A stretch of DNA of 64,000 bases, from assembly GCA_019828565.1 (NCBI GenBank), contig JAHDYR010000037.1, positions 62,001 through 126,000 of the forward strand. The letters run 5' to 3'. This document shows positions 4,042 to 53,589 of the stretch, one piece after another. Positions within the stretch are counted from its first letter, which is position 1, and each line of letters opens with the position of its first letter. Source of the stretch: Carpediemonas membranifera BICM (taxonomy: Eukaryota; Protista; Fornicata). Below the pieces are notes generated by a model. The model was not told where the DNA came from. It made no database searches and was given only the letters and a program-made list of their open reading frames with translations. The translations under genes and the position numbers were made by a program.

Positions 4042-4091
4042 CATACTGTAAGAATGGCTAGAGTCTCCCGGGAGATACTCTGGAGATACTC
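4042..4091 (+). repeat. TIR of A1
   Basis: CATACTGTAAGAATGGCTAGAGTCTCCCGGGAGATACTCTGGAGATACTC. Confidence 0.97.
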
Positions 4092-4377
4092 ATGTGTCAA
4101 CGCTGGTCAAACCTCGCGATCCAGGCGATCTCAGGCACCTCCAGAACATCTAGAAGGTAGTTATAGAAGCATAAAAGACATGTCTGGCGTCTTGAAGTAT
4201 CACATGGTGTCAGTGTTGATAAAAGAGGATAACGCATTTTATGTTGTAAATGTGAAGTGCTCGTTCGAACATGGGATCTTAACAGCGGTGTTTTATAGCT
4301 AATAGCAATGCCCTCTGAAGTTTTCAGCCTCCAGTATCTTCTACTTCCGTATGAATTAATGATTGAATCAAGAGATT

Positions 4378-4484
4378 GAGAAAATGAAGACTTCCCCACA
4401 AAAACCAAACATGGGGGGATAATCCATGGGGGTCAAGTACTATCCGTACATACTCAGGTTCTGTGGGGAAGTCTTCATTTTCTC
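4378..4484. repeat. 23-bp perfect inverted repeat (hairpin)
   Basis: GAGAAAATGAAGACTTCCCCACA (4378-4400) pairs with 4462-4484. Confidence 0.9.
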
Positions 4485-5001
4485 GCATTCGAAAAATCTG
4501 CAAAATTTTATCAACGATGAGATGGTCTTGGAAGATTGTGCTAACAACAGAGGTGTAACTAGATCAACAAAGGATCATGGAACCCTTGGTTTGTCCTAAC
4601 GCCCGAAACAGTGCCCAAAGAGCTCGTGACACAGGTGAACGCCAGAAAGAAATGAAGTTGCTCAGAGTGTACACCATATTGTCCTAGTTCCAATACTTTT
4701 TACCATTTTCTTCCAGCTGCTTTCGTTGGCGAGTTTCATTTTTTTCTTACCGTTACTTCCGCAGTATCTTGCAAGATTCAGGGGGAAATTCAAATTCACT
4801 TTTCCTTTGAGGGCAAAGCAGAATTGCGCAATAACGCATCAATGGGTATGAGAAGCATAGAATACGTATAAAACTCAGTGTAGTTGCTGCTCACAACTTT
4901 TTGGAGGAAACAGAGCAGCGGAAGCCCCAAACCAAAAATCTTTCACAAACTCTTGTGAAACTTGTGAAATGTGAAAGTGACTTCAGCAAAAATTCCTGAG
5001 C

Positions 5002-7555
5002 ATGCACATTGTCATACAGACCTTCATTGGCACTGTCTACGACAATACTGGCCCTCCAAGGACTGCAGAGCGTATGAACTACATTCTCGCTCATACATAC
5101 CTCTCCCTTGTTGGTATTGGCGGAAATACACAGGATCGAGGGCCGCCAGCGCCGAGAATTCCGTGAACTCATCTTGGAAATGGCTAACCAGGGCCTATTT
5201 GCGGACATGGAGGTCGATCCGAGATTTTTCGCCGACCCGCACGACTCTCGACCCTTCTTGCGTGCAGTACGTTCCCATAGAGGAGTCGCCCCGACCTTCG
5301 ATGTCTTCGTACGTGACCACGCGCGTATTGCTGTCACCCACGAACGCTTGCGGAGACAGCACGAGGTCTCAACTGAGGAAACTGACAACTACAAGCAGAT
5401 TTTTGGAGCTTGTTTCTATCCTGATGTACATCAAGTCGGGTTGTAACGCAACCCATGAGCTCTTTAAGCTCATCCGTAGTCTTTCTGCGCGACTTCATAT
5501 GCCAATCATCTCCAGCAAGGCTGCTGATATCTTCGTGAAGCAGTTGCAGGTCAATATCACCAAGATCAACGGCCTGGTTGCAGCGCTGACTAGACCAGAG
5601 GTTGCTTTCTTGGGTCATCTCGTCCCTGTGGAGTCTGTCACAGTCAACACGACCTGGCGGTGGGGCAGAAATGGCACAAAGTCGAGACTCGAGTGCACCA
5701 ATCGCCTAACGGTGGACGAGGGTGTCGATATCCAGCCCCTGACGGACGCGGAGAACGTCATTGACTTCAAGTGGGAGAAGCCAATGCTTGATCTTCACTA
5801 CGAGACGAGCGATGAGGCCACAAGTCATCGCCCTGAGCTCAAGCAGACCCAGGGAGTCACCCTCGGCAAGCGGCTCAACAGCTCCACATGGGACAAGGTT
5901 GATCGAGTCTGGTTTGATGCCGTTCGTTACCTCAAGCAAGCTGTTCGCCACCCGGAATGGCTCGAGTCGGACCAGCCCAACTACGTTCGATGCAAGAACG
6001 CCCTTGGCAACAGGGTTGGAGTCACGTTTAGCCCCATGAAGATCCTACTATGGCTTGACGGGTGGAAAGGGGGTTCTGCTGCCTTCAAGCTCCGCATCTA
6101 CGACCCCACAGGCTTCACATTCCCCAACAAGATTACTCCACCTTTCCGTATAGTCGAGTATATGGGTAGCGAGGGTGATTTGTTGATGGAAGAGTCTCTT
6201 TCTCGCGTCGAGAAGGAGATTGAGCGCCTATACACGAGTCAGATACCCATCAGAGACACTGGTGAGGTCACAATCTTCGACCATGTCATCGTCATGGGCG
6301 ATCATGCCGCCCTCCGCCACATGCTGTCCAGAAAGTCGGGCCGGCCCAACTATCCACACCCTTGCAACACGATTTACCACAAAAGTAAGGCGCTCCACCC
6401 GATAGCAGGCCGCCATCGTCTCACCATCAAGGACAACCTGGACGATAAGACAGCATACCAGGCTGAAGTCGACGACCCGAACCGAGTTCAAGATGTACTT
6501 GCAATCTATGGCGATTTCACCAATGAACGCATGGTGTTCGAGAATTGTAGTGTCATCCCTCTTGAGAAGATCGTCATATGCCCTCCATTCATGCACGACT
6601 CGCACCGTTTACTCGAGCAGGTTGCCCATATCTGTGGTTCTTTCAAGAAGCATCCCACCACCCGCGGGTCCCGCGAGGAGATCATCCAGAATAAGCTCCT
6701 CAACCTCAAGCTTGGCCGTATGTCGTCCATGCGAAGCATCGATAGGACCGTAGGTTGTAACGAGCAGTCGTCCGCACGTGTAAGGATGGCTGCCACGACC
6801 TTAAGAGGACTACGTTGCTCTCCCTGAGTGCATTCAAGATATCATTCGGCTCATTGGCTACCTCCAGGCCATGTACTACTCGTCCGAACCTGTGACTGAC
6901 GCGGCTGTCGCGTTTCACTTCATGGCTGCCGCAGTGGCCCACCTCATTCACGTCACGATTGCGTTCATTCCTAACAAGGATAAGACTTCCATATCCCTGC
7001 TATCAAGCAGCGAAGCGAAGACGAAGGAGAAACCGTGCGCTGAGAACCTCTACAGCATCAGCAGACTCACGACGCAGCCCCTGTGCCACAAGCATCTCAA
7101 GGTGCCGCTGTTCTATATCCTAGAGGAGTACTTTGAGCGAGAGTTCATCAAGAACCAGGAGGTAGCAGCCAAGTTGCACAGGAAGGCAGTCCTTGAGGGC
7201 ATTTGCTTGATCGAGCAGACAACTCTCGCGTGTTCCTTCCTGACGGGCATGCGTTCTTTTTGGTCGGCAGGACTACTCTGTCCCCCAGCTCCAGCGACTC
7301 AAGTGTGTGCGAGTTCACGACTGCTGTAAGGATGCGAAGCATTGGTTTGGTGTCCGCACACTGACCACCGTGACCTTCGAGCCAACTCGTGAGATGATCC
7401 AGACCTTTCAGGAGACTGTTGATGAAGTGTGGGAGTTTGTAGAAGAGCATACGACGCTGACGTGGGGTGAGGAGGGCACGATGTCATGCAGTCTGGCGGA
7501 CCATGGCATAGAGTTAGTTTGCTGCCTGTGTGGAGAGTGTAGCAGACAGAATTGA
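5002..7555 (+). CDS. Transposase of A1 (~850 aa after repairing frameshifts), RAG1/Transib/Chapaev-like DDE
   Basis: LLWLDG (D1), VMGDHAAL (D2), CPPFMHDSH, GCNEQSSAR, PLFYILEEYFERE (E), Cys-rich C-terminus. Pieces 5108-5446, 4971-6827, 6871-7329 and 7307-7555 are colinear with the B paralog. Confidence 0.78.
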
Positions 7556-7681
7556 GGCATCCGCGTGATATAAAGTGATGTAAGATGGTTCCGTGATAAA
7601 TTCATTCATTTTTCATATGTGCCACTTTTTTTCATGAATGGCACATTTCACATTTCGCAGGTTTCACAAAAGTTTGTGAAA

Positions 7682-8639
7682 ATGAACCAAACGGGGAAAG
7701 AATCTTGGACAGAGGATACTCTTGCAGCCCATAAGGCTTATATACAGTACGTAAGACTTTCTGATAAGTCAGACATCATCCCCAGTGTCCGTACGTTTTT
7801 TTAAGCAGGACGTTGCCACGAGAGGAGTTGATGACATCGATCATCGCTTCTTCATGTTTGTTCACCCAGTGTTGCCCAGGTATTTACCCAGATTGGTTGC
7901 GATTCGTGACTGCAAGACTGATTCCATCATTTCGGCCTTGTTGCTCACGAAGGAGTCATACAACACCGAAGCTACTGATGAAACCCCTTCCGAGCTGCGC
8001 CAGGACTTATATGTTGTGGTTATTCGCACGGCATTCTATGCCAGGGGCAATGGTCTCGCCACGATTCTTCTTTCGGTTGCCTCTGCCGGACAGAGGATCC
8101 GCCTACAGTGTGTAAGTTCTCTTGTGCCAGCCTACCAGCGTATGGGGATGTCCATCTCCAAGCAAAAGTCCACGATGGAGTACCTGGATGATGCGAAACT
8201 GGTGACCATGGAGGCAACATACGGCCCGAACAAGTGGACGAAGCTCGGTGAGAGTCTCGTTGCTTGCCATGGATATGCCATGAAGTCCTGGAGGGCTCCC
8301 CCGTCCGTCGACTACGGTACGGCTTTCACTTCTGTGGACCAGGTCCAGCCTCCCCAAAGAGAACCCAAGCAACCCAACCCACCCTGCCCACCAAGCCCTC
8401 GGACAAGCTCAACCGCTACATTAAGCGTCTGAGGAAGAGTGTTACCCCGCACCCGACGCGCAAGAAGCAACGTGAGATAATCATCGCCCTTTACGACAGC
8501 AACCGAAGGGATTTGGTCCAAAAAGATCGTGGATAAGAGATCAAAGATGCGTAAGGATTACCAGAAAGAGAACTATTTCGAGGAAGAGTGGTACCATCTG
8601 CTGTCTGAGAAGGAAGATGAGGAAGAGAATGAAGATTAA
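7682..8639 (+). CDS. GNAT-family acetyltransferase (intron 7856-7891; frameshifts)
   Basis: Acetyl-CoA motif A IRTAFYARGNGLATILL, motif B LVPAYQRMG, and a basic/acidic C-terminal tail. Confidence 0.8.
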
Positions 8640-8659
8640 ATGAAGAAGCAGTCGATTTA

Positions 8660-9346
8660 TTACTCATTTGAGTTGACGTTAGCTGCGTGGAAGAGCAGGA
8701 GGCTCGCGTAAACGGGTATACGCAGAACATCACGAGCCTCTGCAGCGGCACGGGCAGCGTTCCTCTTCTCAATCACAGCGGCGAGGTCCTTGAAGGTCTT
8801 CGAGTGCTTCTTGAGGACAAGCTGCGGACGCTCGAAGATGAGCTTAGAGTCCTTGCGGCACACACTCTCCAGAAGGACCTCTCTGACCTTGTCGACAGAG
8901 ATACCAAGCCTCTGGGCGACGAAGGCGTAAGCGCGGGGGCGGACCGACTGAGGGATGCCGTGGAACAGCTCGCGGTACTCACGGACAGTTGCCAAGAGAG
9001 GGCTGCCATGGTCGACCTCATCTCCTTCGGCGTCCAGGCTGATGAGGGCCCTGAAGCGCTTCTCCTTGGCCTCAGAAGACTCGCCCTTGTACTGCGCCAT
9101 GATCTGCTCAATGCTATCGAGAGAACGGAACTCCGCTTCATCCCTAAGATCCTCCGGAACGAATGTGGGGAGGTCATTGGGGCGTCTGTCAACCACCTCA
9201 TTGCAAATGCGGTTTCCGGTGGCGACATCGGCAGCGGAGATGCTTCCAGCAGCGTGCTCCTTCTCTAAGTAAGTAGAAATCATTTCCACAGCGTTTAGAC
9301 GCTTTCTGCCCTTGCTCTTAGCAGTATTACTCCGTTTCGGAGGCAT
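8660..9346 (-). CDS. Conserved unknown 228-aa helical protein with basic N-terminus
   Basis: Homolog at 48025-48786 (RFRALISLDA/RFKALLSLDA; KRNAARAAAEARDVLR/KRNAERAEAESRDVLR); copy at 39997-40683. Confidence 0.85.
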   Translation of the reverse strand: MPPKRSNTAKSKGRKRLNAVEMISTYLEKEHAAGSISAADVATGNRICNEVVDRRPNDLPTFVPEDLRDEAEFRSLDSIEQIMAQYKGESSEAKEKRFRALISLDAEGDEVDHGSPLLATVREYRELFHGIPQSVRPRAYAFVAQRLGISVDKVREVLLESVCRKDSKLIFERPQLVLKKHSKTFKDLAAVIEKRNAARAAAEARDVLRIPVYASLLLFHAANVNSNE

Positions 9347-9876
9347 AACGTTTCTTCAAGGTGCACTTTATGCTCGCAACGAAATTAGAAAACCAAACGA
9401 AGAAAGGAGAAGAGTATCGATCCTCAAACGCTGGCAAGCATGTTTATATCACTAAAAACAACATCATGAGAGCTCTGTGGCCTCGAATGGCCTGTAATAG
9501 AACCTAAACAACATCAACAATTGTAACTCGTCGAGGAAGCGTTGAGATGAACTATAAACGCGGGAATGGATCAAACAATGGATTTAAGAGTGGCATACAA
9601 GGCCAGAATACCGCAATTATCGTCCGTTGATCCACGTGACCTCCATCTTGGTCGGTATCCAGAGAAAGCCCTTCAGACGCTCGCAACACAACATTTAGAA
9701 GACTTATCGTGAATGGCTCCTTCCATGATGGACCTTCACCTGGACATGCCATCTCTGACATGTCCAATGGTCTCCATTGAGCTCGCATTCATCCCTCTGA
9801 GCATCCGCCCCATGGTCCAATCAGATGCCCAATCAAAATTCTGCACCGAAGTGCCCCGAGGACCTCCTCTGAGTTC

Positions 9877-10044
9877 ATAAGGCTCTCAGAGCCTTATACA
9901 CCAATTCGAAATCGTGTATAAGGCTCTCAGAGCCTAATGAATCTCCCGCGCGCCGTTGCCTACTGATACTGGTCATTTTTCCGCATGGTTTATTAGGCTC
10001 TCAGAGCCTTATGAATTTTTTTCATTAGGTCCTGAGAGCCTTAT
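9877..10044. promoter_or_regulatory. Four copies of a 21-bp palindrome upstream of the OTU gene
   Basis: ATAAGGCTCTCAGAGCCTTAT and variants at ~9877, 9918, 9992 and 10024; the last ends 4 bp before ATG 10049. Confidence 0.7.
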
Positions 10045-10048
10045 AATC

Positions 10049-11423
10049 ATGCAATCGGTTTTCGACTTCTACATGCTCTTGAAGCGTTCGAAAACGTTTG
10101 GTAAGCAGTTCTTTATCTTCTATGACAGCGCTGAGATCAGTCAGGCCTCATCAAACGCGCAGGAGATGATCAAGTGCTCACTTCTTCGTAAGTTCCTTCT
10201 GCCCGATGACAAGATCCTCACCGCCCTTCTTCGTGATCGTAAGTACTTTCCCCATACCTTTTTACACAGATATTGGCTGGAAAACGCTTCGCAAGCTCTT
10301 CAGGTCGCCTCACCTTATCCTGCACCTAAGAGAAACTGCCGAGGCTCAGCTTGAGCTGATCACGACATCGGCTGAGCTGAAGAAGGTCATGGGAGATCAT
10401 GCCTACGACAGCCTTGTCCAGAAGGTCCGCCGAGAAGTGTCTTCGGATCACGAGCACGACGTTGTAGGTAAGTACTCCAAATAACTCCTGCTTATTCAGT
10501 CCTTTCGCTGCTCCGTGAGCGCATAATGCGCAAGGTGAAGCCAGGAAGGTCGGGGGGTCGTCCGTTCGTTCAAGAACAACGCCGAGCCTGAGCTGTCGGA
10601 CCCGGTCGACGTGCAGTTCGACCGGATAAGGCACCTGGACGCGCTTCTGATGGACTCTCCCGTCCACAGAAGTACCCTGAGTGGCACATCGCGCCTCCTG
10701 CGCCGCCATCTTGCCGTGGAACACAACGGTGCGATCCGTGATTTGAAGAGGGAGCTTTGGCGAGCCCGGGCCAAGATTGAAAAGCTCGAGACGGAGAAGC
10801 TTGTGCCCTTGAAGAAGGAGGCTGAGGTCATAGACCTGGATCGGGAGGCTTTGGTGGCCGCAGACCCCAAAGATGACGTCCAGACCATCATGGAGAAGAC
10901 CGCTAAGAAGTTTAAGAACGATACAAGCTCTCTGAAGCGGTCTGAGGTGCCTGGGGATGGCTCATGCATTCTCAGCGCCATGCATCTCATCAGGACTGGG
11001 TCCCAGCCTACTGTTGGTGAGAAGCTTCAGCTGTACGAGGACATCCGATCCTTCTGTGAGGGCAAGGGGTTCGAGGGCGACCCGTTCTCTGAGATGCCTG
11101 GCTCCCCTTTCCCCTGGGCAGACCATGAGGCCATCCAGGCCAGTGTAGAGCTGAGTCACACTCCGGTAATCATCACCCAGATCGACGAGGACCTTACCTG
11201 CCTCTGGGTCCACAAAGGTTGGGAAGATTCAGAGTTCTTGCCCATCCAGGATGCGACGCTGGACAAGATCTTAGGTCTTTGTGAGAGCATGAAGCTCACT
11301 CAGTTCATCGTCATCGAGAATCGTCATGCCTGTGTCTACAGTCTTCCGGACCGCAAGCGCAAGGCAGCTGCCGCAGAGCCCGAGAAGCGTGCTACTCGTC
11401 CGGAGGATGTCACCCGCTCATAA
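10049..11423 (+). CDS. Coiled-coil protein with C-terminal OTU-like cysteine protease (introns 10239-10269, 10468-10499)
   Basis: VPGDGSCILSAM (Cys), WADHEAIQA, NRHACVY (His). GTAAGT..AG introns join the upstream ORFs. Confidence 0.8.
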
Positions 11424-11453
11424 ATGATTGATTGAATTGATATCTCTTCAAGT

Positions 11454-12456
11454 TTATTCACTCTTGCCTTGAGTCATGCGCGCAGTGTGGAAGCGCTTAC
11501 GGGCGGGGTTGGACTTGGTCTTCCGCTTGCGGGGCTGCGGCTTGACCTGCAGTATTTTGAACTGCTCCACCTTTCGAGCGAGGTAGTGAGGGTCATCTAT
11601 GGCGAGACTCTTGAAGCGAGCAATCGGGTGCTCCTCTTCATCGGCCTCAAAGTAGGTCTCGCCATAATCGATGCGCAAGAACTCGCCGCGAACGATGTTG
11701 GCAGTGGCCCTGACCGATATCACTGGCAGGCCATCCACCAAGACGTCCACGAACTCACAGTTGACATCGTCAGGGCTGTGGTTAATCAGGTGGACACCCG
11801 CTGCGGCCGACATGGCATCGACGGCGACCTGACTGTCAGCGAATGACATGCTGTGTAATGGTAATGGAATATGCGAAACAAACACCATCTGGCCGTTGTT
11901 GCTGGCCGTCTCAGCATCGGGAATCAGCTTCCCGAAGTATATGCCGAGACATGTGCCAGCTGAGATATCCTCAGTGGCAATCATGCCTCGGCCGACGCTC
12001 TGCGTCCGATTGAGGGCCGGATGGTCGGGCTCCTGGGTCAGACGGGGGTCGCAACGGGTCTCGGATGAGATCCAGGCCGGAGCAGGAATGGCCTGAAGGC
12101 TTATCTCATCCGAAATCAGCCGCTTGACGTCCTGCAGGTCTGAACCCGGGTAAACATGCGTCCACCTAGGGTGGACGTGCATGACGGACCCCTCGACGGA
12201 GTCCTCCTCGGCTTCAGACGAGCTGGATGAATGGGAAGGCGACTCGGGAGGCGGAGGAGGAGGAGAATCTTGCTCCTTACCATCCTCGGGCGACTCGGGA
12301 GGCGGAGGAGGAGGTGATGCTGCCGTTACAGTCGTTTCCGCAGGACGTTGATCCTGCGGAGAAGCAGATGACTCAAAAGTCTTGTTGGGTGGATTTTGAG
12401 TCCTTCTCTTACCTACCGGTTGCTGCTTCCCTTGCGGGCATCTTTCTTCTCGCCAT
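11454..12456 (-). CDS. SET-domain lysine methyltransferase (intron 11851-11883)
   Basis: GRGMIATEDISAGTCLGIYFG, LINHSPDDVNCEF, IVRGEFLRIDYG; Pro/Ser-rich N-terminus starting MARRK. Confidence 0.9.
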
Positions 12457-12578
12457 ATCTTCGTTCTCTTTTTTTCTCGCAACTCCCGATCCGAAGAACA
12501 GGCGCATCGCTGATCAGATCCGAACAATACTGCAGTAGCATGCATAAATAGTGTAGCAATGAAGGTATACCTCTTTAC

Positions 12579-13652
12579 TTGGATCAAAAGCTTGTCCTTT
12601 GCTTCAAATCAAAATGTGCCATTCATGAAAAAAATGGCACATTGCAAATGGACGAGAAATACGGAGAATTCGGCACGCGACGCATCAGTAAGGACCAAGA
12701 AGTCTTTGAATGTGTCTGTGGTAAGGTTCAGCTCAGGCGTGGACATCGCGGGATCGGTTTCAAGTCTTCTTCCTCTCACGAGTGTCCTTTTACAACAGAG
12801 AAGTTGATTAACCGACGGGTGCTAATCACCATCGAGCCGCTGCATGGTTTCGAGACCCCGACTCAGCCCTACCCCGTCTTCCGCGTGGAAAGTCTTGCCA
12901 ACTCATCTGGCTATCATTTCAAGCTCAAGACGGCTCTAGAGCTCGTTGATGATGAGTGGCTGACTGCCGTTGCCCGCACCTTTAAGTCTACGTCCCATCT
13001 GGCCGAGGTACTTGAGGAGTTGGCGTCGCAGTACTCTAACTTCGACACTTACTGGGTGATATCGGGTCATTCTGATACAGAAACGTCGCGTATGATCATT
13101 GATACGTCTACGAACGAGTTTCTGTATCACCATGATCTGGTCCAGCTCATCCTCAGGTCATTCGAGAGCCCTTCCTTGGTGAGATCGACGCGTGTGCGTC
13201 AGATTTACTTTGCCACCTGCTCCGGACTCGACAGATCTGAGGAGTCTCAGCTGTGCAGTGCTATTTCGACAGCCAAGTACAAGAACACATGCATTATCCT
13301 CACTCCTGAGAAGGTTCTGGCGCATGAGCTTGTTCTCCAGGACGCCTATTGGCTCTACCGCGTGACATGCCTCGACAATCCTCTTTTCTTTCTGACGAAG
13401 TACTTCTCTGGCTATCGTTTCGCGCCTGGCTCAGCAGGAAGACGGATTATAGCCAATGGTTCCTTGTCATTTCCCAACGAGGCCAGGGTCATCATGTCTG
13501 AGACTAGCTATGCCCGGCCCATTCCTCTTCCTGAAATGCAAGACATCGTTTCTGATGTCAACGAGTATGACCCGTTAAGAACCGACCAGAGAAGACTTAT
13601 GAATGATCGATACATAAGCATGATGACCCGTGCGCTTGAGAGAGACGTGTAG
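12579..13652 (+). CDS. Putative clan CD (caspase/metacaspase-like) cysteine protease with N-terminal Cys motif
   Basis: WVISGHS...IYFATCSG His/Cys after hydrophobic strands, conserved in the B paralog (WVVSGHS...IYFATCTG). Real start probably MDEKYG. Confidence 0.6.
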   Translation: MDQKLVLCFKSKCAIHEKNGTLQMDEKYGEFGTRRISKDQEVFECVCGKVQLRRGHRGIGFKSSSSHECPFTTEKLINRRVLITIEPLHGFETPTQPYPVFRVESLANSSGYHFKLKTALELVDDEWLTAVARTFKSTSHLAEVLEELASQYSNFDTYWVISGHSDTETSRMIIDTSTNEFLYHHDLVQLILRSFESPSLVRSTRVRQIYFATCSGLDRSEESQLCSAISTAKYKNTCIILTPEKVLAHELVLQDAYWLYRVTCLDNPLFFLTKYFSGYRFAPGSAGRRIIANGSLSFPNEARVIMSETSYARPIPLPEMQDIVSDVNEYDPLRTDQRRLMNDRYISMMTRALERDV

Positions 13653-13695
13653 TAAACAGATATATATACAATTTATGATCATCTCTCACTAAACA

Positions 13696-14920: not shown

Positions 14921-15006
14921 GAGAATTTCTATCCAAGCTGTTTACGTTGTTACATTTGTCTATTTACGTAGACTCCTGGCATTGACAATACCTAAAACTG
15001 CGACAT

Positions 15007-15231: not shown

Positions 15232-15333
15232 AAATGACATTCACTAGCTTTGCTTCTCATTTCACATATTCTTGTGAAATATGTGAAATGTGAAACAGAT
15301 TCTAGTGAATCTCATTTTTTCTTGCACTTTTTG

Positions 15334-37891: not shown

Positions 37892-37921
37892 ACTTGAAGA
37901 GATATCAATTCAATCAATCAT

Positions 37922-40683: not shown

Positions 40684-40703
40684 TAAATCGACTGCTTCTT
40701 CAT

Positions 40704-41789: not shown

Positions 41790-44340
41790 TCAATTCTGTC
41801 TGCTACACTCTCCACACAGGCAGCAAACTAACTCTATGCCATGGTCCGCCAGACTGCATGACATCGTGCCCTCCTCACCCCACGTCAGCGTCGTATGCTC
41901 TTCTACAAACTCCCACACTTCATCAACAGTCTCCTGAAAGGTCTGGATCATCTCACGAGTTGGCTCGAAGGTCACGGTGGTCAGTGTGCGGACACCAAAC
42001 CAATGCTTCGCATCCTTACAGCAGTCGTGAACTCGCACACACTTGAGTCGCTGGAGCTGGGGGACAGAGTAGTCCTGCCGACCAAAAAGAACGCATGCCC
42101 GTCAGGAAGGAACACGCGAGAGTTGTCTGCTCGATCAAGCAAATGCCCTCAAGGACTGCCTTCCTGTGCAACTTGGCTGCTACCTCCTGGTTCTTGATGA
42201 ACTCTCGCTCAAAGTACTCCTCTAGGATATAGAACAGCGGCACCTTGAGATGCTTGTGGCACAGGGGCTGCGTCGTGAGTCTGCTGATGCTGTAGAGGTT
42301 CTCAGCGCACGGTTTCTCCTTCGTCTTCGCTTCGCTGCTTGATAGCAGGGATATGGAAGTCTTATCCTTGTTAGGAATGAACGCAATCGTGACGTGAATG
42401 AGGTGGGCCACTGCGGCAGCCATGAAGTGAAACGCGACAGCCGCGTCAGTCACAGGTTCGGACGAGTAGTACATGGCCTGGAGGTAGCCAATGAGCCGAA
42501 TGATATCTTGAATGCACTCAGGGAGAGCAACGTAGTCCTCTTGGTCGTGGCAGCCATCCTTACACGTGCGGACGACTGCTCGTTACAACCTACGGTCCTA
42601 TCGATGCTTCGCATGGACGACATACGGCCAAGCTTAAGGTTGAGGAGCTTATTCTGGATGATCTCCTCGCGGGACCCGCGGGTGGTGGGATGCTTCTTGA
42701 AAGAACCACAGATATGGGCAACCTGCTCGAGTAAACGGTGCGAGTCGTGCATGAATGGAGGGCATATGACGATCTTCTCAAGAGGGATGACACTACAATT
42801 CTCGAACACCATGCGTTCATTGGTGAAATCGCCATAGATTGCAAGTACATCTTGAACTCGGTTCGGGTCGTCGACTTCAGCCTGGTATGCTGTCTTATCG
42901 TCCAGGTTGTCCTTGATGGTGAGACGATGGCGGCCTGCTATCGGGTGGAGCGCCTTACTTTTGTGGTAAATCGTGTTGCAAGGGTGTGGATAGTTGGGCC
43001 GGCCCGACTTTCTGGACAGCATGTGGCGGAGGGCGGCATGATCGCCCATGACGATGACATGGTCGAAGATTGTGACCTCACCAGTGTCTCTGATGGGTAT
43101 CTGACTCGTGTATAGGCGCTCAATCTCCTTCTCGACGCGAGAAAGAGACTCTTCCATCAACAAATCACCCTCGCTACCCATATACTCGACTATACGGAAA
43201 GGTGGAGTAATCTTGTTGGGGAATGTGAAGCCTGTGGGGTCGTAGATGCGGAGCTTGAAGGCAGCAGAACCCCCTTTCCACCCGTCAAGCCATAGTAGGA
43301 TCTTCATGGGGCTAAACGTGACTCCAACCCTGTTGCCAAGGGCGTTCTTGCATCGAACGTAGTTGGGCTGGTCCGACTCGAGCCATTCCGGGTGGCGAAC
43401 AGCTTGCTTGAGGTAACGAACGGCATCAAACCAGACTCGATCAACCTTGTCCCATGTGGAGCTGTTGAGCCGCTTGCCGAGGGTGACTCCCTGGGTCTGC
43501 TTGAGCTCAGGGCGATGACTTGTGGCCACATCGCTCGTCTCGTAGTGAAGATCAAGCATTGGCTTCTCCCACTTGAAGTCAATGACGTTCTCCGCGTCCG
43601 TCAGGGGCTGGATATCGACACCCTCGTCCACCGTTAGGCGATTGGTGCACTCGAGTCTCGACTTTGTGCCATTTCTGCCCCACCGCCAGGTCGTGTTGAC
43701 TGTGACAGACTCCACAGGGACGAGATGACCCAAGAAAGCAACCTCTGGTCTAGTCAGCGCTGCAACCAGGCCGTTGATCTTGGTGATATTGACCTGCAAC
43801 TGCTTCACGAAGATATCAGCAGCCTTGCTGGAGATGATTGGCATATGAAGTCGCGCAGAAAGACTACGGATGAGCTTAAAGAGCTCATGGGTTGCGTTAC
43901 AACCCGACTTGATGTACATCAGGATAGAAACAAGCTCCAAAAATCTGCTTGTAGTTGTCAGTTTCCTCAGTTGAGACCTCGTGCTGTCTCCGCAAGCGTT
44001 CGTGGGTGACAGCAATACGCGCGTGGTCACGTACGAAGACATCGAAGGTCGGGGCGACTCCTCTATGGGAACGTACTGCACGCAAGAAGGGTCGAGAGTC
44101 GTGCGGGTCGGCGAAAAATCTCGGATCGACCTCCATGTCCGCAAATAGGCCCTGGTTAGCCATTTCCAAGATGAGTTCACGGAATTCTCGGCGCTGGCGG
44201 CCTCGATCCTGTGTATTTCCGCCAATACCAACAAGGGAGAGGTATGTATGAGCGAGAATGTAGTTCATACGCTCTGCAGTCCTTGGAGGGCCAGTATTGT
44301 CGTAGACAGTGCCAATGAAGGTCTGTATGACAATGTGCAT
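41790..44340 (-). CDS. Transposase (A2)
   Basis: Copy of 5002-7555. Confidence 0.78.
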
Positions 44341-45298
44341 GCTCAGGAATTTTTGCTGAAGTCACTTTCACATTTCACAAGTTTCACAAGAGTTTGTGAA
44401 AGATTTTTGGTTTGGGGCTTCCGCTGCTCTGTTTCCTCCAAAAAGTTGTGAGCAGCAACTACACTGAGTTTTATACGTATTCTATGCTTCTCATACCCAT
44501 TGATGCGTTATTGCGCAATTCTGCTTTGCCCTCAAAGGAAAAGTGAATTTGAATTTCCCCCTGAATCTTGCAAGATACTGCGGAAGTAACGGTAAGAAAA
44601 AATGAAACTCGCCAACGAAAGCAGCTGGAAGAAAATGGTAAAAAGTATTGGAACTAGGACAATATGGTGTACACTCTGAGCAACTTCATTTCTTTCTGGC
44701 GTTCACCTGTGTCACGAGCTCTTTGGGCACTGTTTCGGGCGTTAGGACAAACCAAGGGTTCCATGATCCTTTGTTGATCTAGTTACACCTCTGTTGTTAG
44801 CACAATCTTCCAAGACCATCTCATCGTTGATAAAATTTTGCAGATTTTTCGAATGCGAGAAAATGAAGACTTCCCCACAGAACCTGAGTATGTACGGATA
44901 GTACTTGACCCCCATGGATTATCCCCCCATGTTTGGTTTTTGTGGGGAAGTCTTCATTTTCTCAATCTCTGATTCAATCATTAATTCATACGGAAGTAGA
45001 AGATACTGGAGGCTGAAAACTTCAGAGGGCATTGCTATTAGCTATAAAACACCGCTGTTAAGATCCCATGTTCGAACGAGCACTTCACATTTACAACATA
45101 AAATGCGTTATCCTCTTTTATCAACACTGACACCATGTGATACTTCAAGACGCCAGACATGTCTTTTATGCTTCTATAACTACCTTCTAGATGTTCTGGA
45201 GGTGCCTGAGATCGCCTGGATCGCGAGGTTTGACCAGCGTTGACACATGAGTATCTCCAGAGTATCTCCCGGGAGACTCTAGCCATTCTTACAGTATG

Positions 45299-47296
45299 AA
45301 ATAGCGTCGCATGCTCATCCTTGACGACCACAATAGCTTGCGCCGCAGCCACATCTTCATCAGATCCACGCCGGACCATGCCGGACTCATAAACTTCCGT
45401 CAAATGCATCCGCACAATATACTTGTCATGGTACGTCAACATCTTGACCCAGATAACGACTACAGTCTTGCTCTTCAGAGCTGACCAGGCCATGACACCA
45501 AAGTTGCTGTACCAATCAGTGGCATCGTCGAACATCAGGGTGGGCACGAACACGTTAGACGTCTCAAGCCTCAGCCTCTCGCCAGCATCGGAGAATCCCC
45601 AGGCGCGCACCTCCTCCCTCACTGCTGCCACTTCCTCTGCCGCAAACTTCTTGTCGAACTCGCCATTCTCAACCTTCTGCAGGCAGTAGCCGATGCACAA
45701 TCCATCCGGGTTGACTGCAATCTTCCGCCAACTCTTACGATCTTTGAGAACTCGCTCGCCTACCTTGTCGTACTCCACGTCGATGTACTTCTGCCTATCA
45801 ACGTCGCTCCGTAAGTATATCTGCATAGGGGGAACATTGGCAGGCGTCGGAGAGTGCTGTTTGATGATAGCCTTCATCTCTGGCGACAGACCGAGGTCGA
45901 GGGGTGGGACCGTTATGAACTTCTGGCCCCCGTACCTCATCATGGTGCTATTGATCCGAGTCCATAAGGCTCCAGTCACATTGTTCCTCTGGAACAGTAC
46001 CATCAAGGCAGCGAGAGGAACGTAGCGGTCAAGCTCCACTGTTGCCTCCTCGGCGCGCCTGACAAGCTCAGCCCAGTTGTCCTCGAGTTCATCGGCGAGC
46101 GCTTCAAGCCCAGCCTCACTCGCCCGTGCCAACTCTGCTTGAGTAAACTGATGGATCGCCTGATCCTCGGCCTTCTGCTGACCTAACTCAGCTTCAAGTC
46201 TCTTCTGGGACTCCTCAGACTCTCTGTTAGCCTGTTCAAGCGCCTCCCTCGCCTCCCTCTCCTCAGCAAGCCGTTTTATCAAGGGCTCGTACTGCTCCAA
46301 CAAGCGCACAGACTCAGGGACATCATCAAGGCCTGCAATGGTGTCGTCTAGCTGCTGAAGGAGAGAACCAACGGTGTCTGTGTCGTCCACATCGGACTCT
46401 ACGTCGACGTCTTGATCAGACTGTGGCAAAGGAACGCCGTCACCCTGCATGGCGGCCGGTTCAGAGTGGCCATCGGACTCGGACTCGTCAGTGTCGGAAA
46501 ATTCATCGTGTGTCGTGGACTCTGCGTCGACAACCGGAAGCGGCTGAGGGGCAGCAACAACGGAAGAAGGCTTGGTGGCTGCTGCTGAGCGATCCTGGGC
46601 CCGGACTAACTCCTCTTGGACCTTCATCAGAGCAGCAGTCGATGAGGCGAGCTCCTTCTCAAGACGAGCGATCTTCCTCTTCAGAGGAGCTGACGGATCG
46701 AGCGAACCGATCTTAGCCAACTCCTCGGCCAGCTTCTCTGAGCCAGCGAAGGACAGCTTCTTGCTGAGCTGGGCGTGGGCGATAAACTGGCCAAATTGGC
46801 CTGCCGGAACACGAGAATCGAGTTTCTTCGAGTCCTTGTGGCGCAACACAAGGTGGAATGCGCGGTAAATCTCAACCTGCTTCTCAACAGGGAGCGAGTC
46901 GACGCCGACTAGAGCCTTATGAACAGATTTGGCGGTGAAGTGGTCACAAAACTTCCGTCGGAATGCCTCAATTGTGTCGGGAGAGTCAAAGTCGACCTCG
47001 CAGAGGTAGTTGCGGTTAGTTGCGTCACATATCGCGCGTAGTTTGGCAACTCCATAGTCGTGAACGTGCTGGCTTAAAGTGCGCTTCAACGGGAACCCGA
47101 AAACAACGTTGATCGTACGAATGCTGATCAGACGGACGCAAACGAAGAACAGAGGGTCATCAGAGACGATGCCGTGATCTTGCAGCCAGGTTATACGGCT
47201 CTTTGTGGACGAAAGGGCGTCGTATGCACGGAATGAATCATCTGTGTAAATAGGACCGTGAAAATGAAAGTGACATACCAGAATCGTCAGGAGCAA
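45299..47296 (-). CDS. Coiled-coil/acidic protein with OTU-like domain (B), cut by A2 just after the catalytic His motif
   Basis: VNPDGLCIGYCL..WYSNFGVMAW..HATLF. The ORF's last ~85 aa are read-through into the A2 end. Confidence 0.8.
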
Positions 47297-48024
47297 GCAT
47301 TGTCTCCTTCAGTTTGCCGAGAGAGATGATGTCTTCGTTAACCATTGTCAATTTGGTCCTCAGAAGACTTTCTCGAAAAATGAAATACGTTTTATCTCAA
47401 TAAATATTGCCAGCTGTCATGTAAATACCTCCGATCAGCCATAAAGACCCAAGAGCTACCCCTTGGCCGATTTTCAGCTCATTCTGCACCTGCGCTGTTT
47501 TGGCCGTTTTTCGATGGGCATCTCCTCGCTCCATTTTCGATTTTGTCAATTTGGTCCTCAGAGGACACAGATTAAATTTTTCAGTGTCCTCTGAGGACAA
47601 CATTGACAGGATTTGTAGCTTATCCATGGCCAGAAACTGAAATCGCTGAAAAGCTCAGAGACGTCGTTATATCATCTATAACGGCATCTCTGAGCTTTTG
47701 GGCGCACGGTTTCATCCTGACGTGGAGATCGATGGTGGTGAAAATGAAGAATTGACTAGGAGAGCTCTACGCTTGCATGCAGCCTTCTATTAGGTTGTTG
47801 ATGTTGGTTATATGCTTCTTTTTCGTTCTCGATGCGTGTGGATGAGTATTCTGTTGCAAGATTCATTTTGATGGACTGATGTTGGTTATAGAGGATAAAG
47901 GCACCAGAATGGATCATATGCATGCTATAAACCCGTTCTGTGCCGTTGGAATACCATAGCTGCGCAGCAATGTCGAGAGTCACAGTTCATTTCACATTTT
48001 CACACGCATTTTAAGGAAACAACG

Positions 48025-48786
48025 ATGGCAAGAAGTAAACAAGGCAATATACAGGCCACTGAAGCTCAAAAGGAGAGGAGAATGGCTCTTGGCAAGAAAG
48101 CGCAGCAAAAGAGCCAGAGCAAGTCCAACAAGTCCACGAAAACAGCCCGAAAAGCTCACAAGACGCCCGTCGAGATTGTTCAGACCTTTATCAGCAATTT
48201 CCTCACTAATAATGACGATATTACCCGCGCAAACGGATGGGTTGTCGACTTCAGCCAGAAGTTTGCCGCCGAGGTCCCTAAGATGAAAGTAGCCTCCTTG
48301 AAGAAGGACAAGCTCTACGGCAATCTCCAGTCGGTCGAAGAGATCAGCCGCAAGTGGCAGGGAGGCGGTGATGAGGACAAGCGTCACCGCTTCAAGGCTC
48401 TCCTCAGTCTTGACGCTCAGACAGATGAGCTAGACACGGACGACCCACTCATCGCGACTGTCCGCGAGATGGATGATGCCTTTCACCGCATTCCCATCGC
48501 CTACCGGGCTAAGGTCCATGCCTTCGCTGCTTCATCGTGCGGTGTGACGGTCGATGACGTCAAGCTCGTCCTGAGCAAGCCTTGCCGTGACCGCGACGCG
48601 GATCTCATCTTCGCCAGACCCACCAGAGTTCTGAAGAAGGAGGCTAAGACACTCAGTCAGCTCACTTCTGTCATTGCGAAGCGGAATGCGGAACGTGCTG
48701 AGGCTGAATCGCGTGATGTGCTGCGTCGCAAGGTATACCAAGCCATCATGAATTACTACTTAGAGTGTTCGGCACAGGAGCTATAA
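48025..48786 (+). CDS. Conserved unknown 253-aa protein (B)
   Basis: Homolog of 8660-9346. Confidence 0.85.
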   Translation: MARSKQGNIQATEAQKERRMALGKKAQQKSQSKSNKSTKTARKAHKTPVEIVQTFISNFLTNNDDITRANGWVVDFSQKFAAEVPKMKVASLKKDKLYGNLQSVEEISRKWQGGGDEDKRHRFKALLSLDAQTDELDTDDPLIATVREMDDAFHRIPIAYRAKVHAFAASSCGVTVDDVKLVLSKPCRDRDADLIFARPTRVLKKEAKTLSQLTSVIAKRNAERAEAESRDVLRRKVYQAIMNYYLECSAQEL

Positions 48787-48810
48787 ATTCTTGTTTTATT
48801 TTCATTTCAT

Positions 48811-49736
48811 TTACACTTCTTCGTCATCCTCAACGGAAATATTCCATTCACTGTCCCAGAAGTTGGCTTTCTTCTCCTTACGCATCTCGGTCCTCGTTTC
48901 CTTGATCTCTTTGACCAGCGTGAAAGAACGAAGGTTGTAATGGCGGATAATCATCAACTTCTGCCTGATTCGGGTGACGTTAGGCCGTTTTGCCGCACGT
49001 TCACGGCGCACGGACACACGGGTGCGTTCCACGAACGAGTCAACACTCCTCTTGTCGGAAGCAGGCATCCCATGAGCGTGCTGATCAAGTCTATTACCAT
49101 GGTTGGTCACGCGGATCAACGTAGAGCCTTGCATTATCATCCCACAGCACTCTGTCAGGCTCTTGCCGAGGTTGGTCCACTTGTTGGGACCCATCGTGCC
49201 CTCCATCGTGACAATGGCAAGTGGGTTGCCCCCCGTGTCCACCAGCTGCTCGACCTGCGACGGGTCCGATGACTCCTTGAGGCCAAAGGACGCATACATG
49301 TCCTGGAGTCGCTTGTCGCACTGCAGTCGGACGAGTTCTTCGGCAGATGCTATGCTAAGAAGCACCCTCGCGAACCCAAGACCTCTGCAGGAGACGGCTG
49401 TCCGTAAGCCGATGACAAACCGCTCCTGGTGCAGTTGTCCGCTCAGGGTCTGCCCCTCCCTGTACGACTCGCGGAAGAGAAGGCATGCAGCCTTGATGTT
49501 GTCCATCTCAACCCCACGAATTGCGATGAGACTGTGTTAACAAGAAGTGTAGTGGGTCTGACATACATGACGAATGAGTAGTTCAGACAGTCGAGGTTCG
49601 AAGTCGCCAGATCTCTGTTGAAGAAGGCCCTGACAGACGGCAAGAGCTCAGACTTGTCTGAAAGCTTGACATATTGAATATAGGCCTTGTGTTGCGATAA
49701 ATTCATCGTCAGCCATGTCGGAAGTGACGTTTCCAT
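48811..49736 (-). CDS. GNAT acetyltransferase (B), intron 49532-49566
   Basis: LRTAVSCRGLGFARVLL, MYASFGL. A 35-nt GTATGT..ACAG intron fuses ORFs 49443-49736 and 48811-49506 in frame. Confidence 0.82.
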
Positions 49737-49859
49737 TGTTTTTCACCAAACAAGTGACGTAATGTGAAAATTGTGAAACTACCAATGTTGAAAAAAAAAT
49801 TGGTAGTTGGGGGAAACACACCAAATGGGATGTACTGACCAATAAAACTCCTTTACTCA

Positions 49860-52438
49860 CTACTCAGCGCGTGCATGACCGCAAATGCAGCAAACAAGCT
49901 CCTCACCCATGTCTGCCAACTCGCAAACCATCACCCCAGACTCTTCGTCCCATGCCAAAGCCGAATAATCGTTGACGTACTGCCACATCTCGTCAACGAG
50001 CTCCTGGAAGAGGCGCACCACCGCCGCCGTGGCATGGAATTGGTGCCTTGCCTCCATGTGGCTGCGAATGGCGAACCATGAGCGAGCTTGTCTGCAGCAT
50101 TGGTGGACTCGGACACGACGAAGCCTGTTCAGCGGGGGGACTGAGTAGTCCTGGCGACCGAACGAGCGAATACCCGTTAAGAACGTGCAGATGAGGGTGG
50201 TCTGCTCGGTCAAACACAGCTTCTCGATCATGGCCGACCTGTGCAACTCGGCTCGGACCTCCTGGTTCTTGATGAACTCTCTCTCAAAGAACTCCTCGAG
50301 GAGGTAAAAAAAGAGGAATGCGGAGATGATCGTGAAGAAGAGGCTGGGCAGTGAGCCTGCTGTTGACATAGAGTGTCTGGGCACATGGCTTCTCCGCCTT
50401 GTCTGCTTGCCCAGGAGGGAGCAACGCCAGCTTTGTCTGGTGTGCCTGCAGACTGAGCATGACGTGGAACAGGTGGCACATGGACGCGGCCAAGAAGTGG
50501 AATGCGACTTTGCTGTCGGTGACAGGCTCGGTTGAGTAGTAAAGAGCCTGGAGATAGCCAATGAGTCGCACAATATCTTGGACGGACTCAGGAAGAGCCT
50601 CGTAATCCTCGTTCGTGGTGTTCGCCATGCGAACTCTGGCAGCAGACTGCTCGTTGCACCCGACAGTGCGGTCAATACTGCGGTTGGATGACATGCGCTG
50701 GAGCTTGCGCTTGTCTACGGCAGTTGCGTTCCGATCAGCGGGGAAGCTGGCGCATAGCCGTGCCACTTGCTCGAGCAGGCGGTGCGAGTTGTGCATGATC
50801 GGAGGACAAAAGACAACTCGCTCCGTGTGGATGACTCGGGGCTCTGGCCGGTTCTCGAAGATGGCCCTCTTGTCGGAGAAGTTGCCATACTCCTCTTTCG
50901 GGTCCTGCACACGGTCGGGGTCGGCCTGCACGGCGTGGAACGCTGCCTTCTGCTCGAGCAAATCATGCAAGGTGACCCGAGAGTGCGCCGGAATGGGGTG
51001 CAGCGCCTTGTGGTCTCGACGGATGCTGTTGAAGGGCTGGGGATAGTGCCCTCCATTACCCTCGATGCCGGATGACAGCTTCCTGATGGCCGCGTGATCG
51101 CCCATGACGATGACTTGGTCGAAGGTGGTGACCTGGTCAGTTCCTCTGATCGGTATGAGGGCTTGATAGATCCGCTCGACTTCTTCCTCAACGAGTTGAA
51201 GGTTTCCCTCCTCCGTCAGCTCCTTCTCACCGGCAAGACACTCAACGAGTCGGAAGGGGGGAGTGATGCGGTTAGGGAACGTGAAGCCTGACGGGTCGTA
51301 GATGCGGATCTTGAACGTTGCGGTATGTCCCTTCCATGCGTCGAGCCACAGGAGTAGTTTTAGTGGTTGGAACTCGACATGGCCTGGGTCCTGAAGGGCA
51401 CGAGAGCAACGCTCGAAGTTCGTCTGGTCAGACTCGAGCCACTCCGGGCGAAGCACTGCCTGCTGCAGATAGTACACGCCATCAAACCACACCGTTTCCA
51501 CCTTGTCCCAGGTCGAGCTGTTCAGTCGCTTGCCCAGATGGGCGATACCTACACTGCCTTTGAGGGACTGGTAGTGCTGGACAGCGTCGGATTCGCTGTC
51601 ATAGTGGAGGGTGAGCGTCGGTCGCTCCCAAGTGTGGTCGGCGACGAGGTCGTGGTCGAAAAACGGAGTCGGCTCGGCTCCGTCGGCTACAGTCAAACGG
51701 TTCGTGAGCTCAAGTCGCGACTGCGTGCCGGACATGGTACGCCGCCATGTTGTATTGCCTGAGACCGACCTGCACGGCACGAGATGCTTGACGAAGGCGC
51801 GCTCCTCCTCAGTGAGGGCCTCTGAGACACCAGATATTCTGGTCATGTCAATGCCAAGGTCCTTAATGAGCACCTCCGCGGTCTTGTTCTTCGAGATCGG
51901 CTTTCCAAGCCGGCGGGAGATGTTGTTGATGAGCTTAAAGAGCTCTTGGGTCGAGTTGAAGCCATTGCGGACGTACATCAGGATCGATGTGAGCTCCATG
52001 ATTTCAGAAAAGTTGGCGGAGCGCTCCTCTGAGTCGTTGTAGTCCTGCACAGCACGCTCCTGGATGGCGTGGGTGCGGTAATTGTCCCGTACGAAGACAG
52101 GGGTGAGGAGGGTGTTGATTTCCGTGTGCGGTTGCGGCACGTTGGAAGGGACGGGAGTCTGCTGGAGGGCGGAAGAACCTTGCGTCGTGAATGCGCTGGG
52201 AGATCAGGTCCGCCTCCTCCATCTCGCGGACGAGCTGGCAGAATTGCTCGCGCTGAGGTCTTGTTCTGGCGGAGTTGAGGCCAATTCCGACCATGGCGAA
52301 GTAGGTACAGCCAAGAAGGTAATTCATGCGCTCAACTGAGCGTGGCTGGTCATCATATATTGTACCGATGTGGCTCTCGAACACAATATGAGCAACCATG
52401 ATTTCTGTAGAGTTTAAAAAAACAAGATTTTTGTACAA
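49860..52438 (-). CDS. Transposase (B)
   Basis: LLWLDA, VMGDHAAI, CPPIMHNSH, GCNEQSAAR, FYLLEEFFEREF; three overlapping ORFs. Confidence 0.78.
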
Positions 52439-53589
52439 AAACTAGGCAGGTACATGCGCAACGGTCTGTGAGATAAATCAGACAATTTGGCTGTTGCTAT
52501 AGCTCTATAAGAGCAGCTACAACTGCGCTGCCGGGGTTCCTTCTTCTTCTCTGGCCGTTTCAACACTATTTCACAATTTCACCAGTTTCACACAATTGGT
52601 GAAACAATGTTCAGAACTCCTTCAGTTTATGGACGTTGGCTCCGAAACTAAAGCAGTGTGTGTATGAGAGTGCCTGATTAAGATTCATCTGATTTTCATC
52701 TGCATTACTTGCGAATTTGCTGTTGTGCTCCTTGTGCACAAAAAAAAGCAAATCTGGATTTGATCTCGAATATTGCCATGATGAAGGCGACACAAAATGC
52801 TCATTTGCCAACCAGTGCAGCTAGAAGAAAATGGTAAAAAGTTATGGATACTGCATGGGATGAGGCCCCCGTTGATGTGTTAAACGGCCATGATCGACCG
52901 CTCAACGTCAGCGCCTCTTTGGGCACCTTCTGCGGCGGTGGATCATGCCAATTGCCGATCTCAGCTCTATGGAGCTAAGTGCACTTGAGCTCTGAGCCAA
53001 GTCTTCTGATTCCATCTTATCGCCGATAAAAAAATGCAAATTTTGAGATACAGAAGATTGAATCTGTCCCCAGAAAACCGAACATACTCCGATGATGTAT
53101 ACTGACTATATACCACCGTAGTATGGCCTGCTTTCTGGGGGACAGCTTCATTCTTTTGATTGGTTGATTCAGTCATTAGTTCCCGGCGACTGAGAAGGAG
53201 TTGACGCATAAAAACAACAGAGGATACTCTTTAGAACACACAGACTTTGCTGACAAGGCCACTTGGTCGTACGACCACTTTTGCCTTCGACCTTAAAATG
53301 CGAGAGGCAATTTGCTCGACCACCAATCTCGCACATGTTACATCAAGCATGGATATGTCATTAATGCACTCGCATCTATCATTTCAGCTGCTTCTTAGGA
53401 CTTCGAACGCCCTGAAGCACGAATAAGGAATTTGCGTTTATCCTCCGTATATCCCCGGATTAACTGGCCATTCTAACAGTATGGTGATGCAGGAATGAGA
53501 TCAATGCTGCTGACAGGTCTCGAGATGGCAGAGGTGCTGGAGAAGAGAGAGCAGAAACAGAATCAGAAGTAAATGTCCTAAGGAGATGT

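Follow-up and report, generated by a model that had tools for sequence, protein, structure and literature searches.

Large transposons of Carpediemonas membranifera with a RAG1-like transposase and a conserved set of putative chromatin- and ubiquitin-acting genes

Some DNA transposons seem to carry, beside the transposase, genes of the kind that write, read or erase marks on chromatin, which raises the question of whether such genes are kept because they serve the element and what they would do for it. The question was raised here by a 64,000-bp stretch of the genome of the free-living protist Carpediemonas membranifera (C38:62001-126000, hereafter the window; assembly of 24.2 Mb in 69 contigs), which holds two copies of an element A (A1 and A2), one element B and C-type sequence around them. 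The published assembly was made from Nanopore and Illumina data (PMC8516963), and NCBI lists the proteins encoded in the window as hypothetical proteins of Carpediemonas membranifera. A preliminary description of the window had proposed that A and B are large DNA transposons with a shared chromatin-modification gene kit. The present analysis, made throughout on natural copies and not on a consensus, indicates that A, B, a third subfamily T and several distant subfamilies are very probably autonomous cut-and-paste transposons, with a transposase of the Asp-Asp-Glu (DDE) type of RAG1/Transib/CACTA kind and with accessory genes under selection.

The ends of both elements were located as the preliminary description had placed them, between terminal inverted repeats (TIRs) and target-site duplications (TSDs). 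The TIRs of A and B are 48-50 nt long and start at the 5' end with CATACTGT, and the element termini read CATACTGT...ACAGTATG, that is, 5'-CA..TG-3'. The flanking duplications are CC at A1, AA at A2 and GT at B. That the TSD is 2 bp long follows from three empty sites. A2 interrupts B, and two uninterrupted B copies elsewhere in the genome show the same site without it, the occupied site being longer by exactly two bases. In two further cases, on contigs C24 (an A copy) and C26 (a T copy), the element is inserted in C-type sequence that is uninterrupted in the window, again with a 2-bp TSD. Matching 2-bp flanks were found in 10 of the 12 copies inspected. The whole 11-14 kb TIR-bounded unit moves as one piece, duplicating 2 bp of its target. 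B measures 12,128 bp once A2 is removed, and A1 itself sits inside the transposase gene of a C-type element, the two halves of which are the flanking open reading frames (ORFs) 15374-16402(-) and 3160-4044(-).

The family is recently active and abundant. The protease-like protein of the elements gave 114 matches in the genome, including approximately 29 at 92-100% identity (A), about 22-25 at 56-58% (B), seven at 49-51% (T) and at least 10 at 26-28% (distant subfamilies). In a search with a transposase profile, 68 of the 283 first-look candidates were scored as matches, and in many of them the frame is open for 850-906 aa. Overall, at least about 70 elements are present, amounting to roughly 3% of the 24-Mb genome. 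A1 and A2 are 99.7% identical in the repeat analysis, and full-length A copies in general are 99.7-99.96% identical by substitutions, yet they carry dozens of copy-specific 1-nt insertions or deletions (indels), which break many reading frames of A1 and A2. Since these indels are copy-specific in near-identical copies of a Nanopore-based assembly, they most probably stem from long-read errors that short reads could not polish out of the repeats, and the broken frames are not to be taken as decay. Introns and real decay were both rejected as the cause on these grounds. Each gene is intact in some copy, for example the transposase at 824 aa, the PHD protein at 414 aa and the protease-like protein at 380 aa. 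Gene calls in the repeats of this assembly need care, given the frame-breaking indels.

The transposase had to be placed by its predicted structure. No Pfam family matched any version of it, and its profile found only two chance coiled-coil matches among PDB sequences. An exhaustive HMMER search of 1.84 billion representatives returned just 28 proteins, 18 strong and 10 weak relatives; the ten weak relatives share the motifs W-x-D-G, A-D-H-K and P-P-x-M-H, and none of the ten had a Pfam transposase match. An AlphaFold2 (AF2) model of the core, built on 26 sequences, reached a predicted local distance difference test score (pLDDT) of 84.5 and a predicted template-modelling score (pTM) of 0.85. 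When this model was searched with Foldseek, all 47 matches at E<=1e-3 were RAG1 or Helicoverpa Transib, followed by the P element; the best match was RAG1 (1.5e-9 over ~500 columns), and Transib reached 3e-6. In VIA-align, RAG1 scored Z 15.0 (385 residues aligned), amphioxus RAGL 14.2 and Transib 10.6, the next match being at 7.9; the P element came near the RAG1 score (Z 14.7), but with 296 residues aligned. The motifs W-x-D, (A/G)-D-(H/N) and L-E-E-x-F-E contain the candidate catalytic residues, and the likely DDE triad is kept in every full-length homologue. On the predicted fold, the transposase is a divergent DDE enzyme of RAG1/Transib/CACTA kind.

Since the model matches RAG1 and Transib, the termini are CA..TG and the TSD is 2 bp, the family can be placed provisionally in or next to the CMCT clade (CACTA-Mirage-Chapaev-Transib, with RAG1). 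Members of that clade are described as having CA..TG termini, 2-5-bp TSDs and the motifs C(2)C and H(3-4)H (Kojima, PMC12730594). The elements share with it the RAG1-like core fold, the termini and a TSD within that range. In contrast, the Carpediemonas transposases lack C(2)C and have Y-P-S-P-F at its place, a point that tells against the placement, and their His motif M-H-x-S-H is H(2)H instead of H(3-4)H. C-x-x-C occurs only in distant relatives, where it lies 19 residues after the second Asp, and the C(2)C of RAG1 is likewise found 19 residues past the second Asp. A TSD of 2 bp is also that of the Mirage superfamily. The elements further differ from the clade in their length of 11-14 kb, in their six or seven extra genes and in having no match to a Pfam transposase family.

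These extra genes were found to be shared across subfamilies. Comparison by tblastx and by ORF-by-ORF blastp shows A, B and T to be collinear from end to end, in the order transposase>, GNAT>, <unknown, OTU-gene>, <SET, protease-like>, <PHD. The preliminary description had counted eight genes in the same order in A and B, and this stood for the seven larger ones, in T as well. The ORF 14586-15032, which had been taken as the eighth, conserved small gene, was rejected, as it runs antisense inside the PHD gene; the small ORF common to A and B is another one (Table 1). Amino-acid identity among A, B and T ranges from 22% (OTU gene) to 57% (protease-like protein, the best-conserved cargo gene). 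The ratio of nonsynonymous to synonymous substitution rates (dN/dS) between subfamilies is 0.11-0.60, with the limit, for A versus B as well, that synonymous sites are saturated (dS 1.2-5.6 or incalculable) and several NG86 values were not calculable. Within-family copies (99.5-99.96% identical) are too alike for a selection test. Nucleotide identity by codon position followed 2>1>3 in every gene, third positions being at ~0.27-0.47, and the small ORF had a weaker version of this pattern. The intergenic DNA does not align between subfamilies. Because coding-type conservation is retained despite saturated synonymous sites and unalignable intergenic DNA, the seven larger genes are judged to be maintained as proteins, and the codon pattern indicates that the accessory gene set of A, B and T is kept by purifying selection.

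Of the predicted functions, the SET lysine methyltransferase is firmly assigned by sequence. The A copy matched Pfam PF00856 at 4.9e-11 (43.4 bits against a cut-off of 22.4) and a T-type copy at 1.3e-12 (48.5 bits); the B and C copies lie under the cut-off, yet are homologous. Its closest solved relatives are Legionella LegAS4-type effectors, KMT5A/SETD8, MLL and ASH1L. The motifs H-L-I-N-H-S (NHS) and R-I-D-Y (DY) are present, and NHS and DY are found in A, B and T. The GNAT assignment is well supported by homology. Homologues from two other sources exceed the Pfam cut-off of 27 (31.4 bits at locus L042 and 36.5 bits at L045), with three GNAT models passed, and the A protein is homologous to these outside GNATs (blastp 1e-5, profile 1e-10). 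The family alignment keeps the acetyl-CoA motif R-x-x-G-x-G/A together with invariant R61, G64, L69, L70, A73-A75 and Y91, and the family profile matched 16 PDB sequences at E<=1, all of them GNATs aligned on the acetyl-CoA motif, the best at E 0.004. The PHD assignment is equally well supported by its residue pattern: the C4HC3 signature C-x2-C ... C-x2-C-x4-H-x2-C ... C-x2-C was present in nine homologues from three sources, five ligand positions being invariant across the nine, and a second Cys-rich module follows it. All three of these calls had been made in the preliminary description and held.

Of two further calls of that description, that of an OTU protease held with moderate support and that of a clan CD peptidase is compatible with the data. 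The OTU domain at the end of the long gene is a probable assignment. Its D-G-x-C loop and C-terminal His-Ala align in A, B and the fusion proteins described below; the top PDB match of the profile was the OTU domain of OTUD3 (E 0.022, spanning the Cys loop and beyond), the rest being noise (E >=0.5); and all 30 of the 30 nearest Atlas language-model clusters are OTU, with a score of 0.90. In a low-confidence model, the Cys lies at a helix start and the His in a strand. The central acidic coiled-coil of the same gene (B L001:7188-9323, ~aa 270-500) was 71-93% identical between subfamilies when L001 was compared with L002/L012, L003/L013, L005/L015 and L006/L016, unlike the other genes of the same subfamilies, which are just 25-50% identical. 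Such a contrast suggests that the central module has recently recombined or undergone gene conversion between subfamilies.

The protease-like protein is a possible clan CD peptidase. Gly-His164 and Ala-x-Cys214 are invariant in six divergent homologues, 50 residues apart, and the two residues are each predicted at the C-terminal end of a beta strand, as in caspases, so that order and spacing fit the original call. The nearest Atlas clusters are DUF6642/CHAT (0.90, 161 shared features), which is at the level of a lead. When an AF2 model of a protease-OTU fusion protein was compared with known folds by Foldseek and VIA-align, caspase-3, pro-caspase-1, c-FLIP and SAVED-CHAT were among the top matches, and the caspase, c-FLIP and CHAT rows were the longest aligned stretches in the VIA list. 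Against this stand the poor quality of that model (pLDDT 49), the absence of any significant sequence match in Pfam or PDB, profile included, and the tie in score between the caspase/CHAT matches and dehydroquinase, SGNH esterases and periplasmic binding proteins. Alternatively, the protein might be another His/Cys or non-catalytic alpha/beta protein, such as an SGNH- or flavodoxin-like hydrolase or a zinc-cluster accessory that binds DNA or protein. With those generic folds at the top of the list at scores equal to caspases, and with the invariant His and Cys, the long caspase-type alignments and the CHAT clusters on the other side, we consider this alternative doubtful, while giving it real weight.

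The linkage of these genes to the transposase extends beyond A, B and T. In the distant subfamilies (loci on C8, C50, C54 and C68), the transposase is at the other end or inverted, and the elements retain the PHD protein and, from the long gene, the N-terminal part. Here the protease-like and OTU domains are fused in one ORF of 491-561 aa (L005:5420-7102(-), L006:5535-7217(-), L017:1781-3253(+)), and such a Rosetta-stone fusion ties together the separate protease-like and OTU genes of A and B. In all subfamilies examined, the transposase comes with a PHD gene and a protease-like gene. Homologues of the transposase at 27-30% identity were found in GCA_002919055.1, an unannotated NCBI assembly (GC content ~48% in the contigs concerned), where its neighbours are two SET genes, a protease-like gene (E 1e-23 to 1e-36 versus A and B), a PHD protein and a GNAT above the Pfam cut-off. 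An ENA metagenome supplied contig L045 (ERZ23495434), on which the transposase adjoins a PHD protein and a Pfam-positive GNAT. A weak match to the OTU profile was present in both sources. The recurrence of the linkage in two other sources, together with the coding-type conservation, bears out the earlier view that the cargo is not a random capture. Beside the related element of GCA_002919055.1 at locus L041 (PPCM01001064.1) stands an RCC1-repeat gene (782-2371). It has over 30 paralogues (35-69% identity), which seem to belong to that assembly itself, and it is without named relatives.

What the cargo does was considered from the families it represents. SET and GNAT are histone-tail writer families, PHD is a reader family, and OTU is a ubiquitin-type eraser. 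The cargo may act on the chromatin or ubiquitin state that the element meets: the PHD finger would read histone tails, SET and GNAT would write lysine marks, and the OTU and protease-like proteins would remove ubiquitin-type marks or process partners, with the outcome that element copies stay transcribable or that integration is steered. Taken as a whole, mobile elements with cargo acting on chromatin or ubiquitin are the best explanation of the locus, and we regard this as reasonably probable; for the narrower part, that the cargo acts on chromatin, the case is tentative, falling somewhat short of likely. Several observations weigh against it. The substrates of SET, GNAT and OTU need not be histones. 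The kit is not universal, as T is without the OTU domain and neither blastp nor the element profiles detected SET and GNAT in the distant subfamilies. Pfam gave no match for the A and B GNAT proteins nor for their OTU proteins (PF02338), and its PHD, PHD_4 and PHD_NSD matches were all sub-threshold (best 20.6 bits against 24). Only 2 of 11 insertions checked lie within other elements, and no homing to element chromatin was seen. Contigs from three small public runs of 2017, whose type was guessed to be RNA, cover only 8649-9271 and 10113-11334, that is, the conserved 228-aa gene and parts of the OTU gene, and hint at transcription; such partial coverage would suit RNA more than DNA sampled at low depth from a 30-copy repeat. 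One of these contigs has a 33-nt replacement at 10464-10498, which reflects a variant copy rather than an intron. When the transposase core and its cognate PHD protein were predicted as a complex, the outcome (score 0.00, alignments not used, partner fold uncertain) weighed neither way.

Two other roles for the accessory genes were weighed. They might serve transposition itself, with SET and GNAT modifying the transposase or host repair and ubiquitin factors, the OTU and His/Cys proteins processing or stabilising element proteins, and the PHD-type zinc fingers acting as an accessory that binds protein or DNA, like TnpA of CACTA elements. The constant company of PHD and protease-like proteins, even where SET and GNAT are undetected, would fit this, as would the protease-like/OTU fusion and the presence among the solved relatives of SET of enzymes with non-histone substrates, such as KMT5A. 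Nevertheless, SET, GNAT and PHD together are classic histone-tail writers and readers, the PHD finger has the full C4HC3 signature, and separate ORFs on both strands give no sign of a polyprotein that needs processing; we hold a role in transposition to be unlikely. It is far less probable still that the genes are passengers, taken from the host a single time by an ancestral element and carried without benefit to the element. Large DNA transposons do commonly capture genes, and the loss of the OTU domain in T and the undetectable SET and GNAT of the distant subfamilies could be read in this way. A coding pattern in every cargo gene at saturated synonymous divergence, the same families linked to transposases of 27-30% identity in two other sources and the retention of catalytic motifs all speak against such passengers. 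The reading that the cargo acts on chromatin or ubiquitin state, for counter-silencing or targeting, is the one preferred here.

Table 1 Coordinates of elements and genes in the window (numbered from its first position)
Feature	Positions	Strand	Remarks
Element A1, full length	4042-15383	+	11,342 bp; TIRs and CC/CC TSD
A1 left TIR	4042-4091	+	50 nt; tip CATACTGT
A1 right TIR	15334-15383	-	
A transposase gene, predicted RAG1/Transib-like DDE	4980-7546	+	Frame broken in A1; 824-aa ORF in copy on contig C35
A GNAT-type acetyltransferase gene	7578-8630	+	A1 ORF 7785-8432
A conserved 228-aa gene, possible helix-turn-helix	8660-9346	-	Kept in A, B and T; only weak helix-turn-helix Pfam matches
A long gene with terminal OTU-like cysteine protease domain (probable)	9801-11420	+	Domain ~10900-11350
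A SET-domain lysine methyltransferase gene	11454-12587	-	SET domain ~11661-11993
A protease-like alpha/beta protein gene	12579-13652	+	N-terminal Cys/His cluster; His164/Cys214 dyad
A PHD-finger protein gene	13696-14942	-	414 aa in intact copies; frameshift splits A1 copy in two
A small conserved ORF	14986-15228	+	~71 aa from its Met; common to A and B only, not T
Element A2, inverted, nested in the OTU gene of B	33955-45298	-	11,344 bp; TSD AA
Element B, right-hand part (element orientation)	30012-33954	-	Includes end of OTU gene
B PHD gene	30525-31751	+	Right part
B protease-like gene	31781-32893	-	Right part
B SET gene	32857-33795	+	Right part
Element B, left-hand part	45299-53483	-	TSD GT
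B OTU gene	45041-47308	-	Left part
B unknown gene	47899-48783	+	Left part
B GNAT gene	48814-49536	-	Left part
B transposase gene	49863-52203	-	Left part
C-type TIR	1478-1536	+	Tip CATGCTGT
Matching C-type TIR	63459-63519	-	88% identical to 1478-1536
C-type PHD gene	20656-21621	+	
C-type PHD gene, second copy	59038-60003	-	
C-type SET-like gene	56571-57269	+	E 9e-17 versus element SET profile; no Pfam match of its own
C-type OTU-like remnant, weak	23612-24259	-	Two frames; E 5.7e-5 and 2e-3 versus element OTU profile

The C-type sequence that surrounds A and B had been credited with its own SET, PHD and OTU genes, and a SET-like gene, two PHD genes and a weak OTU-like gene were indeed found. 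Its TIRs are flanked by CT and AA and so share no TSD. An inverted duplication of 6-8 kb within C (16548-23528 versus 53584-62234) carries the PHD and HEPN-like genes, and C is either two copies or rearranged. The HEPN-like protein (21939-22952(+)) has weak matches at E 0.03-0.04. A protein kinase (28709-30001(+), Pfam 1.9e-23) is encoded by an ORF that ends 10 bp before the B insertion, and the related element in L041 also has a kinase nearby (21% identity, E 5e-6). At the edge of the window, ORF 449-1651(+) encodes an aspartyl protease of retroviral type and the beginning of a reverse transcriptase. The match to reverse transcriptase stops close to the C-type TIR at 1478, and the ORF may be part of a retrotransposon that the C insertion truncated.

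Single cargo genes of related kinds have been published in other transposons. In Phytophthora, HarbingerS and MuDR families carry a gene for a SET methyltransferase (Kojima and Jurka 2014, cited in PMC12730594). These are likewise DNA transposons with a SET-type gene; they differ in having PIF/Harbinger and Mutator transposases and, as far as the citing text describes them, a single SET gene, whereas SET here is joined by GNAT, PHD, OTU and protease-like genes. TET/JBP dioxygenases are known from fungi, where eleven transposon lineages encode them (KDZ, EnSpm, Plavaka and others; PMC12730594), and VANC is known from VANDAL elements, in Arabidopsis. Those elements also encode epigenetic modifiers or anti-silencing factors kept across lineages, and some of the carriers are CMCT elements too. 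In contrast, TET/JBP and VANC act on DNA methylation, and the cargo here is of histone or ubiquitin type and forms one linked multi-gene set, not a single gene swapped between superfamilies. OTU proteases are known from Ginger1 DNA transposons and Helentrons, and Ulp1 proteases from Mutator-like elements (MULEs) and CACTA elements (PMC2836005, PMC4067079). The common point is a papain-like cysteine protease of deubiquitinase or deSUMOylase type as cargo; the transposases are others, and the OTU here is very divergent, falls under the Pfam cut-off and is paired or fused with a second His/Cys protein. The preliminary description knew of no element with such a combination of genes, and in agreement with it, searches of the literature, as distinct from Repbase and Dfam, yielded no account of a CMCT-type element that joins SET, GNAT, PHD, OTU and protease-like genes. 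The same searches yielded no account of transposons in Carpediemonas, and the genome paper (PMC8516963) does not describe these elements.

A further parallel lies in the RAG1-RAG2 pair of vertebrate V(D)J recombination, which, like the elements described here, combines a RAG1-fold enzyme with a separate protein that has a C-terminal PHD finger. The PHD finger of RAG2 reads H3K4me3. The TSD of the elements is 2 bp and not 5 bp, and none of the searches run related the N-terminal half of the element PHD protein to the Kelch propeller of RAG2. At its furthest, the finding could be an unrecognised RAG1-fold lineage with its own PHD reader, SET/GNAT writers and OTU/caspase-like eraser, rewriting marks at its own copies or targets, in which the pairing of a RAG1-like enzyme with a PHD protein would be an independent or ancestral parallel to RAG1-RAG2. 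We offer this as speculation that is rather improbable in its full extent.

A lack of ORC/Cdc6 and of most kinetochore proteins has been reported for Carpediemonas membranifera (PMC8516963), an organism whose chromatin biology is largely unexplored. For the annotation of metamonad genomes, the result means that many 'hypothetical proteins' are element genes, belonging to a family that is abundant, recently active and invisible to Pfam transposase models. Transposon-encoded epigenetic modifiers have so far been scattered single-gene cases; here a whole putative set of writer, reader and eraser type is found with a RAG1-like transposase, and the set persists through deep divergence and into other organisms. 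The family offers a tractable case for how mobile elements manipulate host chromatin, and it bears on the history of RAG1-type enzymes and their PHD-bearing partners.

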